Below are positions 25,119 to 34,943 of a DNA stretch of 64,000 nucleotides, in pieces. The notes below the pieces were generated by a model. That model saw nothing but the letters and a program-made list of their open reading frames with translations. It did no database searches and was not told the origin of the DNA. The stretch is from Zygnema circumcarinatum SAG 698-1b (taxonomy: Eukaryota; Plantae; Zygnematophyceae): contig CM074812.1 in the NCBI GenBank assembly GCA_037447605.1, positions 2,852,001 through 2,916,000 of the forward strand. The letters are read 5' to 3'. The first letter of the stretch is position 1, and each line of letters begins with the position of its first letter. A program made the position numbers and the translations under genes.

Positions 25119-28100
25119 ATGTTTCGCCTTCCTCCCCCCCTCCTCCCTCTCCTCCTCCTCTCCCTCTCCCTCTCCCTCTCCCTCCCTCTCCCATCCGCTT
25201 CTCTCACCACCGCCGACCTCGTCCCTTATGGCCCCACTAATGGTGACGTCACACTGAGGCGATGTGACGACTGTCTGAGCCCTGTCACGTCACTGCTGCC
25301 GTCATTCTTCTCCTTCTTCAACAAGACGGTTTACACGGTCTACGTCAGCAATAACGGCCACATTACCTTCGACGGGTGCGTAGCTCTCTCGCTCTCTCTC
25401 TCACTCTCTCTCTCTCGCTCTCTCTCTCTCGCCCTCTCTCCCTCTCTCCCTCTTACCCTCTCCCTCTCATTTCTCCCTATCAATATGATCCTCTTTTTTG
25501 GTATGGTCTCTCCTTCTAGTTTCCCGTCCTCCCCTTCTACCTCTCCATTCCCTCCCTCCCTCCCACACACCTTTCTCCGTAAGCCACTTTCCTCCCTTCC
25601 CCACTCCTTTCCTCCCTCTCACATTCCTCTTTTCCTCCCACTCTCCCTCCCTCCCACATTCCTCTGTCTGTAAATTCTCCTCTCTTCTCTCTGTCTTTGT
25701 GACCTCTCTTCCTCCCCCGTTATCTCCCTCCCTGCCACATCCCTCTCTCTGTAAATTTTCCTCTCTTTCTCTCTCTCTTTGTAATCTCTCTCCCCCCCCT
25801 CTCTCACTCCCTCCCACATTCCTCGCTCTGTAACCACCCTCCCCCCTCTCCCCCTCCCTCCCGCTTTCCTCTCTCTGTAATCTCTCTCCCTCCGCCCCTC
25901 CCTCCCTCACTCCCACGTTGCTGTCTCTGTAATCTCTCTCCCTCCTGTTTCTGTTAGCCTCCGTCTCTCTCACCACCCCCTACCTCCAGTCTGCGTTGCC
26001 AATGTATGCAATGGCTTGAACTTGCTCCGCTGCACTAAAGCGCTCCAAATGTTCAATCTTTAACTCAAATATTTTTTATAGTTCGCGCATAAAAATAAGC
26101 CGAAATTTCCAATCCAAGCTGGATGTCGTTTTTCAATTTACAGCAATAGCGGGAAAAAAAAACTGCGGAAACCAATTACGATTCAGCAAATAATTCCTTT
26201 CTTGGGCCACTTTTTTCAATTGCAGAGAATCCGGTTTCGCAACTTCGCCTATGTTTCCACGCGAGGAGAGATTTCCCCTCTTGTCTCCGTTTTGGGCCGA
26301 TATATGTGAGTGGGGAGACGCCTCTCTCTCTCAATCTCTCTCTCTCTCTCTCTCTCGCTCTCTCGCTCTCTCTCTCTCTCTCACTCTCTCACTCTCTCTC
26401 TCTCTCTCGCTCTCTCTCGCTCTCTCTCTCTCTCTCTCTCTCTCTCTCTCTCGCCCTCTCTCTCTCTCTCTCTCTCTCTCTCTCTCTCTCTCTCTCTCTC
26501 TCTCTCTCTCTCTCTTACCTCTGTTTCTCTCGCCCTTTTTCCTTCCCTCCCTCCCTCCCTCCCTCCCTCCCTCTCTCTCTCTCTCTCCAGACACGACGAA
26601 TCCCACCGGCGGCTCCGTATTCTACCGCTCTGTGGGCCCCACCAGCCGCCCCGCGGACCTCTCCCTCCTCACGCAAGGAATTCGAAGTTCGTTTCCGACC
26701 GTGGCGGAGGCAAAAACGTTTACAGCGATCGGCGGCTTTATCGCCTCTTACATCAACGTGGGGTACTACTTGTGAGTGAAGACTTCTACCAATTTAAGAT
26801 ATACAAAGTACCAAGTTGAGGTTGTTAGTGTTGTTGGGGTTGTCGCTTCCTCCTATCTGTCGCACCCTCTCCTCCTCCCTCTCCGTCCCTCACTCCCTCT
26901 CTGCCTCTCCGTTTCCTTCTCTCTCTCCCTCTCTGCCCTTCCCTCTCTCGCCCTCTCCGTTTCCTTCTCTCTCTCTCTCTCCACTTTTCCTTCTCCCTCC
27001 CCTTCTCTTTCACCTTTCTGCCTCCCCCACACTCTGGATTTGTGAAAGTTCTGGTGGTTTGTGGGGATTATAAGGTTGAACTTATTTGGGTTCTTTGTAA
27101 TGTATGAAGTTAGAAGATTGGTAGAGGTAGTTTCCTTGTCAACATTTACTTTACTTGTGATGTAGTGTTTACACATGTATGCATGTACCTCAGCATGTAC
27201 TTATTCTCTCCCCTCTCTCTCTCTCTCTCTTTTTCTCTCCCTCTCCCTCTCCCTCTCCCTCTCCCTCTCCCCCTCTCTCCCTCTCTCTCTCTATCTATGC
27301 ATGCACGTATGCTCATGACAATGGTTGCAGAAGTGACACCAACAAGACGAATACATTCCAGGCATTCATCACTTGGGGCGGAACCACTTCCTCCCCTCTC
27401 ACCTACGCATGTTTCCTCTACCCTCAGAACGGTATTCAGTGGGGTAAGAACCTCACAAACTCAAACCAAACTCAACCAAACTCCTCCCTTCATTGCTAAT
27501 TCTAAGCATTAAACAGTTCAAGTCATCAGTTAAATCTCTCTCCCTTGCCTTTAAATTTTTCCTCCTGCATTTCTTCGACTGCTGTACCGGTCCTTTTACT
27601 ATGATTTTGAAAGTTTTCATCCTTTTATTTAACACCTTTTTGAGGAGGGGATGCAGGTGGGAACTACGCTCAGGCGGGATATGATGCAGGCGACGGAAAA
27701 ACTTTCTTCAACATTCGATCGTCGGCAAATGCCGATATTTCAAATCTGCCCCTCACATCAAATGTTAACATTCCCGGAAAATGGTGCTTCAAAATCTCCG
27801 GCAGCACCCTTGTTCTTCCAAGTAAGGCTTACCTCATATTCCAAAAAACAGAATTAAGTATATAATAATCACCTATAATAATTCAGTATCATTTCCCTTC
27901 TATGATGCGCCGCTGTATTTGATATTCTTTTGCATCCTCCACCCACCTTTTTGCAACCCCTCACTCCCTCCTACCCACTCTCCCATATCTCTCCTACTCT
28001 TCTCCCTCCCATCTGTCCCAACCTCCCAAACTCCCACCTCCCCCCAACCCTCCCACCTCTCCCACAATCCCACTCTTTCCCTCCTACCCTCTCTCATATA

Positions 28101-34100: not shown

Positions 34101-34943
34101 TTCGGGCACTCCCATCATTCAATGGAAAGGTTTACAAACGATTTTGAACCAAACGTGCGACGGAATGGAACTCAACTGCTTCGATTTCACTCGTGGTTTG
34201 TTCACATGCACGAAAGCCGACCAACGGATTTCTGCCACGTGTACATCGTTTTGCAACGCCTTGCAGCCAATGGGAGCATGCGGAGGCTATGGGTATTGTT
34301 ACAATGTGAACAGTCCCACGTGTGAATGTGATTCGGGGTATTACAACCTCAATAATCCAACAACTTGCATTCCTTGTAAGGCTCTCTCTCTCTCTCTCTC
34401 TCTCTCTCTCTCTCTCTCTCTCTCTCTCTCTCGCTCCCTCTCTGTCTCTCTCGCTCTCTCTCTCTCCCTCTCTCTCTCCCTCTCTCCCACTTTCTCACTT
34501 GGAGAGTTGGGAAGAGCTTTTATGATGATAATGTGGGAACCCTAACCTGAGAAGGTCTAGAAACCCTAAATAAGGACCTGGAAACCCTAGCAATTTGGAA
34601 GATGAAGAATTCTGAAACCTGAAAGTAAAATCTGAAATGGTTGTCGCTTTTGTTATTGCTTCGAATTTGATTGAAGTCTGCGCGCTCCGAAGCTGGAGGG
34701 AGTTGGAAGGGGGGAGAGAGTGTGAGAGAGAAGGGGAGAGAGAGGACGGTTGGAGAAAGTTTGAGAGAGAAAAGGGGAGAGAGAGGGGGAGAGAGTGTGA
34801 GAGAGGAGGGGAGAGAGGGAGGGAGGGAGGGGGGGAGAGGAATTCACTTTCACCCTACAGTCTGTCGTTACTGCAAATAAATGCCATTGACACACGTTTT
34901 GGTTTTGAATCATTTTGCAGCTCCGAGAGGGAAGCAGACCTAA
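25119..34943 (+). CDS. Predicted secreted protein, about 837 aa: signal peptide, NIDO, SP(n) linker, NIDO, SP(n) linker, LRRNT_2, about 5-6 plant LRRs, Cys-rich/EGF-like domain
   Basis: Phase-consistent GT-AG exons: 25119-25375, 26226-26305, 26591-26771, 27331-27443, 27657-27821, 28245-28512, 29086-29165, 29814-29994, 30306-30418, 30561-30719, 30882-30989, 31151-31283, 31788-31859, 32813-32884, 33052-33123, 33406-33477, 34011-34375, 34921-34943 (sum 2514 nt). Motifs: YVSNNGHITF, SPFWAD/IAPFWAD, NTFQ, AQAGYDAGDG, PGKWCFKI (NIDO); LLTFK..IVSDP..L.TW...CSWFGVNC (LRRNT_2); four 72-nt LRR exons (e.g. LSHNFFSGAIPPTIGNL). The last exon is uncertain (alternative 34861-34880). Confidence 0.85.
30014..30266. 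repeat. Intronic hexamer microsatellite (GTTGCA/GTTACA/GTTATA)n
   Basis: Degenerate 6-bp repeat filling the intron between exons 29814-29994 and 30306-30418. Confidence 0.9.
33135..33220. repeat. Interstitial plant-telomere-like (CCCTAAA)n tract, intronic
   Basis: About 12 degenerate AAACCCT units; related tracts at about 30445-30490, 31890-32215 and 38995-39175. Confidence 0.8.

Follow-up and report, generated by a model that had tools for sequence, protein, structure and literature searches.

A predicted secreted protein of Zygnema circumcarinatum that couples a tandem NIDO pair to an LRR-EGF-like head

A stretch of 64,000 nucleotides from the zygnematophycean alga Zygnema circumcarinatum SAG 698-1b (contig CM074812.1 of assembly GCA_037447605.1, positions 2,852,001 to 2,916,000 of the forward strand; here called the window) carries a plus-strand gene, beginning at window position 25119, whose exons specify, in order, a predicted signal peptide, a NIDO domain, a Ser-Pro spacer, a second NIDO domain, a second Ser-Pro spacer, an LRRNT_2 cap, about six leucine-rich repeats (LRRs), a cysteine (Cys) cap, and an EGF-like knot. 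In our judgment it is likely that this is one gene, shuffled from two cassettes, and that its product, of ~815-830 residues, is a secreted wall or matrix protein, rich in disulfides and probably heavily glycosylated. Judged from the sequence, the product is probably real and functional as a secreted wall or matrix protein. A preliminary description of the same DNA had put forward a single gene of this make-up, running from a signal peptide and two NIDO domains through proline-rich (Pro-rich) spacers, LRRNT_2, and LRRs to a Cys-rich, EGF-like end, and the analysis given here supports it.

Structure of the gene

The coding blocks appear as short protein-like stretches in three plus-strand frames between 25.1 and 34.4 kb. 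From 25119 to 34375, 17 exons (E1 to E17) can be joined at canonical sites to give 813 codons free of stops; all introns of this model are GT-AG, and the phases agree throughout. The ATG at 25119 is the first in-frame ATG downstream of a stop, and the GC content of the model is 0.64 at third codon positions and 0.51-0.52 at first and second positions. The preliminary description had given 18 phase-consistent exons; 17 of these stand, but the last is a phase-compatible candidate only. In total, the model contains 20 Cys and 6 N-glycosylation sequons. Phase-1 introns at E6, E11, E12, and the end of E17 mark the module boundaries. The exons, all on the plus strand, are as follows.

25119-25375 (+): E1, start codon, predicted signal peptide, and beginning of NIDO 1
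26226-26305, 26591-26771, 27331-27443, 27657-27821 (+): E2-E5, rest of NIDO 1
28245-28512 (+): E6, spacer 1 and then the beginning of NIDO 2
29131-29165, 29814-29988, 30306-30418, 30561-30719 (+): E7-E10, rest of NIDO 2
30882-30989 (+): E11, spacer 2, 108 nt, entered and left in phase 1
31151-31283 (+): E12, LRRNT_2 cap
31788-31859, 32813-32884, 33052-33123, 33406-33477 (+): E13-E16, four LRRs of 72 nt each
34011-34375 (+): E17, last LRRs, Cys cap, and EGF-like knot

One of these exons is unusual. E7 is only 35 nt long (29131-29165) and is preceded by a strong pyrimidine-rich acceptor that restores the frame. A more obvious acceptor for it, at 29102, was rejected because it shifts the frame and puts stops into E8. 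When the nucleotides between the two acceptors (29102-29130) are read in the frame of E7, they are still NIDO-like (IETSFPVSDS) and align both to the bacterial NIDO protein described below and to E2 of the first copy; they cannot join E6 in phase. This segment could be either the relic of a longer exon or the product of a 1-nt assembly error.

The NIDO pair and its relatives

The Pfam scan was made exon by exon, and the gathering score of the NIDO family (PF06119) is 25 bits. Each copy matches the profile in collinear pieces.

25119-27821 (+): NIDO domain 1, E1-E5; E3, 14.9 bits (profile 43-92); E4, 29.8 bits (profile 97-127); E5, 41.3 bits (profile 140-185)
28343-30719 (+): NIDO domain 2, rest of E6 and E7-E10; E8, 15.3 bits (profile 43-89); E9, 19.2 bits (profile 100-127); E10, 29.5 bits (profile 141-185)

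Even as lone exons, E4, E5, and E10 exceed the gathering score, which places the domains in the family. The two NIDO domains of the preliminary description, which had itself named failure in profile searches as a ground for refutation, are thus confirmed, PF06119 being matched by both copies. For the N-terminal parts of the domains, E1/E6 and E2/E7 can be aligned collinearly with a bacterial NIDO protein. Compared exon by exon, the two copies are 51-60% identical (tblastn E values of 1e-10 to 1e-16); their intron positions and phases are shared, and four Cys are conserved in each, which together suggest that a unit of five exons was duplicated in tandem long ago. With the model exons and the bacterial NIDO protein as queries, no further NIDO exon was found in the window outside 25.1-30.7 kb, and the upstream part (1-25000) likewise contains none.

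A metagenome scan with an alignment of the C-terminal NIDO exons (A2) recovered one bacterial family only. The bacterial NIDO protein found in this way, encoded at 8900-10672 of contig L003, has 591 residues; besides its NIDO domain, which scores 124 bits, it has a signal peptide, a metalloprotease-like HExxH motif, and a PEP-CTERM-like tail. It retrieves 1,888 relatives, and the 120 that were listed are all bacterial, many of them cyanobacterial proteins with PEP-CTERM anchors. Over their last 48-55 residues, the algal NIDO exons are 46-50% identical to these bacterial proteins. Feng et al. (2024; PMC11096116) report that NIDO is present in filamentous Zygnema and that land plants and three unicellular zygnematophyceans lack it. 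Given this listing and the abundance of the domain in bacteria, the statement in the preliminary description that NIDO is characteristic of animal matrix proteins does not hold. That work gives Pfam presence or absence only, with no NIDO architecture and no combination of NIDO with LRR in the text or supplements examined, and those supplements have no NIDO entry. Elsewhere, no paper was found that combines NIDO with LRR or extensin, a result of literature searching to which no domain co-occurrence search of proteomes was added. Nor was a paper found that describes a NIDO-LRR-EGF build, in line with the earlier remark that the architecture was not one recognised from land plants.

The NIDO part of the algal protein resembles that of the bacterial proteins (P0034 of Gloeothece verrucosa and the L003 protein) in being collinear with them through E1, E2, and E5. 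The bacterial proteins, however, are single-exon, single-domain surface proteins with a PEP-CTERM tail and have no LRR, EGF, or Pro-rich spacer. The animal NIDO proteins (nidogen-1/2, SNED1, alpha-tectorin, and MUC4) are secreted, Cys-rich proteins of the matrix that have an EGF-type module and carry the NIDO domain close to the N-terminus. The algal product is like these in its N-terminal NIDO, its predicted secretion, its Cys-rich character, and its EGF-like module; it differs from them in that its NIDO is in tandem and in having plant-type LRRNT_2/LRR units and Ser-Pro(n) spacers, which the animal proteins lack.

As a proxy for the algal domain, the cyanobacterial protein P0034 was modelled with AlphaFold (AF2). 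The model is all-beta, with a predicted local distance difference test score (pLDDT) of 79.8, and Foldseek found no match to it at E <= 0.001. In VIA-align, its NIDO domain gave Z values of 4.7-5.4, below the level that would indicate more than a shared arrangement, to the N-terminal beta-sandwich domains of glycoside phosphorylases and hydrolases. This modelled resemblance to the beta-sandwiches of carbohydrate enzymes weakly suggests a lead to follow and is no evidence of glycan binding. A feature search of the ESM Atlas with E5 gave a best score of 0.86, to phage Laminin_G_3 clusters, which is below the level at which a match would be counted. A word search with the open reading frame (ORF) that contains E10 gave no match, the method being too insensitive and too length-bound to show absence.

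The Pro-rich spacers

Two short Pro-rich segments separate the folded parts of the protein.

28245-28342 (+): Pro-rich spacer 1, codons 1-32 of E6, with two SPPPP and one SPPPPPP and without tyrosine (Tyr)
30882-30989 (+): Pro-rich spacer 2, E11, with two SPPPP and two SPPP and without Tyr

The E6 acceptor at 28245 is phase-consistent, and alternative in-frame acceptors upstream of it are possible; E11 is a candidate exon that can be skipped without a change of frame. The linker strings quoted in the preliminary description, SPPPPSPSPPPPPP and SPPPPSPPPPSPPP, are present in the sequence, as is its Cys-rich motif. Its term extensin-like, on the other hand, has to be given up. Extensins and related hydroxyproline-rich glycoproteins (HRGPs) have long Ser-Pro(3-5) arrays with Tyr motifs, whereas here seven SP(3-6) motifs are spread over two spacers of ~35 residues from which Tyr cross-link motifs are absent. 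Because of this length and this absence, the segments are better described as HRGP-like spacers than as extensins.

The LRR ectodomain and the exon that closes it

E12 encodes an LRRNT_2 cap (Pfam PF08263) that scores 35.7 bits against a cut-off of 20.7. The next four exons, E13-E16, are exactly 72 nt each, are entered in phase 2, and specify one 24-residue plant-type LRR apiece; judged by eye, the four repeats fit the consensus LxxLxLxxNxFSGxIPxxLGxL. With LRR_1, E14 and E15 score ~15 bits, below the cut-off of 20.6 because the queries are only 23 residues long. With its LRRNT_2 cap and the 24-residue repeats that come after it, this is a plant-type LRR ectodomain, and the cap and the 72-nt LRR exons noticed earlier have therefore held up, the one by its Pfam score and the others by their exact length. 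Furthermore, the LRR part of a profile built from the E17 alignment (A1) matches the ectodomains of FLS2, BRI1, and ERL1 with E values of 1e-13 to 1e-16. Three-frame translations of introns 12, 13, and 16 revealed no extra LRR exons.

E17 contains the final one and a half LRRs, the Cys cap, and a stretch of six Cys with EGF spacing. The spacing, C-x8-C-x5-C-x7-C-x-C-x12-C, is conserved in 12 relatives, and the exon closes with a phase-1 donor three codons past the last Cys. The Pfam EGF families score below their cut-offs (Pvs28, 17 bits; cEGF, 16.1 bits; EGF_2, 12.5 bits). An AF2 model of E17, made on the 12 relatives, has a pLDDT of 86.6, and a Foldseek search with it returns mostly EGF domains, with a root-mean-square deviation of 1.6 A over 28-29 residues at nonsignificant E values (>= 0.75). 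Since the profiles are subthreshold and the fold matches nonsignificant, the knot is called EGF-like rather than EGF, a designation that follows from the Cys spacing and the predicted fold and not from any family threshold. Consequently, of the Cys-rich/EGF-like end of the preliminary description, the Cys motif and its spacing are present, but the thresholds of the EGF families are not reached.

Relatives of the LRR-EGF-like cassette

When E17 was compared with 1.84 billion representative proteins, 14 matches were obtained, the best at 37% identity. Those with names come from Mesotaenium endlicherianum and comprise a 327-residue LRR protein, a 1,139-residue LRR-papain-LysM protein, and a protein in which LRRs and the module precede a kinase. 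The second of these (P0003, ME000166S01720) has the order LRRNT_2-LRR-module-Peptidase_C1-EGF-LysM over its 1,139 residues. A transcriptome-derived match encodes LRRs, the module, a membrane helix, and a kinase, and in P0010 and P0012 the LRR-EGF module lies directly before the membrane helix and kinase. In alignment A1, N, Q, and G residues and six Cys are invariant, with N28, N55, C56, Q71, C77, C81, C90, G92, G94, and C96 among the positions kept.

The genomic contig behind the best E17 match (L001:600-4053; Logan contig SRR9302961, GC content 38%, from another organism) begins this series with an exon for LRRNT_2, continues with no fewer than nine LRR exons of 72 nt in phase 2 and an E17-like exon, and then has a papain-type exon. 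The acceptor and donor of its E17-like exon are identical to those of E17 in position and phase. These shared splice sites, together with the E17 homologues, indicate that the LRR-EGF head is a conserved, movable cassette and that the boundaries of E17 are supported by homology. For this half of the gene, the idea of a one-off chimera thus fails, the cassette being common to the Mesotaenium LRR-papain-LysM proteins and to LRR kinases. A metagenome scan with E17 gave no match, and a word search with the P0010 module returned only P0010, by a method too insensitive and too length-bound to show that the architecture is absent.

With the zygnematophycean LRR-EGF mosaics, then, the gene shares LRRNT_2, LRRs, and a Cys/EGF-like module, with 31-39% identity across E17 and the Cys pattern kept. 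It differs from them in that its cassette is C-terminal, with no papain, LysM, membrane helix, or kinase following, and in its NIDO head; NIDO was present in none of the 10 E17 matches (of 14) that were scanned with Pfam. The gene does not, therefore, belong to the LRR-EGF-papain-LysM family, although cassette and intron positions are shared with it.

The LRX proteins of land plants are a further point of comparison (LRX2, PDB 6qxp; LRX8, PDB 6qwn and 6tme). Like them, the product is predicted to be secreted and has an LRRNT_2-type cap, LRRs, a Cys-rich part after the LRRs, and Ser-Pro(n) sequence, and profile A1 aligns weakly to residues 270-352 of LRX2, including its Cys-rich tail (E value of 5.9e-5). 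In contrast to LRX, the Pro-rich parts here precede the LRRs and are spacers of ~35 residues without Tyr cross-link motifs, and LRX proteins have neither NIDO nor a six-Cys EGF-like knot. With its LRR-Cys part at the C-terminus and nothing Pro-rich after it, the product is not an LRX protein. As a separate observation, a Logan protein fragment of 254 aa among the relatives of E17 (P0005) runs from an LRR-Cys/EGF module straight into a Pro-rich tail (PSPRRPPPPRRSPPP...), an LRX-like order.

Secretion and the 3' end of the gene

The signals that bear on the location of the product lie at the two ends of the gene, which are given here with the possible terminal exons.

25119-25199 (+): predicted signal peptide, ~27 residues, ending PSAS before LTTADL
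34505-34943 (+): terminal-exon region, three phase-compatible candidate acceptors
34505 (+): candidate exon start, immediate TAG
34507 (+): candidate exon start, 14 codons, stop ending at 34550
34921-34943 (+): candidate exon (E18 of the preliminary description), 7 codons, tail SPRGKQT, TAA ending at 34943

There is one hydrophobic segment only, at residues 8-26, with a Kyte-Doolittle mean of 1.74 (19-residue window, threshold 1.6). The residues at -1 and -3 of the predicted cleavage site are small, and the beginning of NIDO copy 2 aligns with the mature end. The evidence for the signal peptide is thus hydropathy and the -3/-1 rule, and its h-region overlaps CT-rich low-complexity DNA. The even Cys count and the sequons are compatible with an extracellular location. 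At the 3' end, the starts at 34505 and 34507 are better placed than the candidate at 34921-34943. None of the three provides a hydrophobic or anchoring tail, the tails being 0, 7, or 14 polar residues. With a single, N-terminal hydrophobic segment and no anchoring tail, secretion without an anchor is the natural reading, and in having no second hydrophobic segment the product departs from LRR receptor kinases and membrane receptor-like proteins.

The convergent neighbour (36315-37860, minus strand) encodes GHMP-kinase C- and N-terminal domains, consistent with a fucokinase-type FKGP. The earlier observation that no transmembrane or kinase exon precedes FKGP was upheld by hydropathy and by tblastn with the membrane and kinase parts of P0010 and P0012, which found no such exon between E17 and 36315. 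Similarly, when the window was searched by tblastn with residues 546-1139 of P0003, no exon for papain, EGF, or LysM was found.

Interpretation and alternatives

The most likely origin of such a gene would be exon shuffling of two cassettes that the lineage reuses, a five-exon NIDO unit, which was duplicated in tandem, and an LRR-EGF head. In the protein, the Ser-Pro spacers may be hydroxylated and glycosylated into short, stiff rods that would keep the NIDO pair and the LRR-EGF head apart. The NIDO pair would hold a matrix component; the best guess here is a ligand of the matrix or surface, because NIDO is found in matrix-assembling proteins of animals and in surface proteins of bacteria. The LRR-EGF head would bind a protein or peptide partner, which is the best guess because algal receptor kinases expose the LRR-EGF unit. 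The whole could then act as an adaptor or decoy, soluble or held in the wall, and might be a functional counterpart, built from different parts, of the land-plant LRX or receptor-like proteins. The adhesion, sensing, or mating role put forward in the preliminary description is likewise hypothetical. A more far-reaching version of this scheme, which we regard as rather unlikely, makes the protein an independent analogue of the LRR-extensins, in which the NIDO pair would attach to a polymer of the wall or mucilage and the LRR-EGF head would capture a peptide or protein signal. It would serve as a soluble co-receptor or as a wall-integrity or mating sensor and would be part of a large and so far undescribed phase-1-intron recombination system (NIDO, LRR-EGF, PAN, LysM, proteases, and kinases), as in the matrix genes of animals but here in the algal sister group of land plants.

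Several observations weigh against the reading of the locus as one functional gene for a secreted matrix protein. The Pro-rich exons sit in CT-rich DNA, where open frames easily arise. E7 is consistent with the frame only as an unusual 35-nt exon, which could reflect decay or a 1-nt assembly error, and the terminal exon is ambiguous among its three candidates. No self-match or ortholog of E17 was found in public protein sets (1.84 billion representatives). Sampled words of 28245-34375 are present at 0.29-0.55 in five sequencing runs of the same organism; since exon-internal words make up only ~0.21, less than the share seen, these figures do not tell RNA from DNA. Finally, the binding functions proposed above are all drawn by analogy.

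Some of these points have another possible explanation, one we think improbable, which is that a gene of the "variable head plus LRR-EGF-papain-EGF-LysM" type is here truncated or in decay, having lost its 3' enzymatic half, and is a pseudogene or is becoming one. The E17 donor would now splice to a fortuitous acceptor or be read through, and NIDO 2 would carry a frame lesion at E7. The position and phase of this donor are indeed those found in L001, where a papain exon follows, and nothing recognisable follows here; in addition, the segment at 29102-29130 is NIDO-like in the frame of E7 yet out of phase for a join to E6, the searches gave no close ortholog, and the shares in the sequencing runs do not separate RNA from DNA. 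However, along 2.4 kb of coding sequence all the other exons are intact and have canonical splice sites, both NIDO copies have kept every conserved Cys and motif despite ~55% identity, and the strong pyrimidine-rich acceptor at 29131 restores the frame. Moreover, a protein that has lost a 3' cassette can still work in binding. It is a little less probable still that the locus makes two products, a NIDO-only protein, arising by retention of intron 10 or early polyadenylation, and an LRR-EGF protein that is separate or an isoform, so that the fusion would exist only in the model. Retention of intron 10 would give a NIDO-only product, with a stop after 5 further codons, and E11 is skippable and lies in low-complexity CT-rich DNA. 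Against this, E12 opens in phase 1 and has neither an ATG nor a signal peptide of its own, and the only ATG in the 431-nt gap between E10 and E12 opens an ORF of 28 codons; there would be no sense in an LRRNT_2 ectodomain that lacked a signal peptide. Because phase 1 is common to E10, E11, and E12, and their introns are GT-AG, the NIDO and LRR halves join in frame with or without the 108-nt E11. An LRR half that has no start of its own and that joins in frame through phase-1 introns therefore favours one gene.

It has also to be asked whether the exons encode only the ectodomain of a larger receptor kinase or receptor-like protein, the exons for its membrane and kinase parts having dropped out of the assembly or lying elsewhere, as the occurrence of the same LRR-EGF module right before the membrane helix and kinase in P0010 and P0012 might suggest. 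This appears very improbable: the tblastn search from E17 to 36315 was empty, all three candidate tails are nonhydrophobic, and the only kinase-like match in the window, at 55.8-56.1 kb, lies beyond other genes.

If the single gene is transcribed as modelled, it would be a clear case of the shuffling of phase-1-bounded cassettes in the algae nearest to land plants. Module shuffling by way of phase-1 introns is a mechanism classically described for the matrix proteins of animals. The gene would also imply that the LRR ectodomain of plant receptors was once a binding head free to move, fused in different genes to kinases, to proteases, or, as here, only to adhesion-type domains. Taken alone, the gene is one more mosaic of putative function. 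It could offer a testable route to the ligands of NIDO domains, about which little is known even for animals, and to how wall sensing was organised before the LRX, receptor-like protein (RLP), and receptor-like kinase (RLK) systems of land plants became fixed.

Surrounding DNA

Between 24500 and 35250, the introns are filled with (CT)n and CCCT-type microsatellites, of which the gene region has six runs that reach 20 nt or more, and the GC skew falls to -0.66. The microsatellites give rise to long stop-free Leu-Ser/Pro-Leu frames on both strands, which are listed as ORFs of 150-340 residues. In intron 13 (31880-32321), a degenerate repeat of ~7 nt (GGTTTCT-like), with a higher-order period of ~112 nt, reads as repeated GFWF when translated. 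Short interstitial arrays of CCCTAAA, the telomere motif of plants, occur in introns, at 33138-33214 (intron 15), at 34564, and at 30447-30462; intron 15 has seven copies within 77 nt, and the window has 13 where ~3.7 would be expected from base composition.

Farther away, the kinase-like match noted above corresponds to an exon (55841-56113, plus strand) of an unrelated gene, encoding a Ser/Thr kinase catalytic loop with DFG. Upstream of the gene lie two retrotransposon pol ORFs, at 3590-5305 and 12041-13759, both on the plus strand, one of which contains RVT_1 and RNase H and the other an aspartyl protease and RVT_1.

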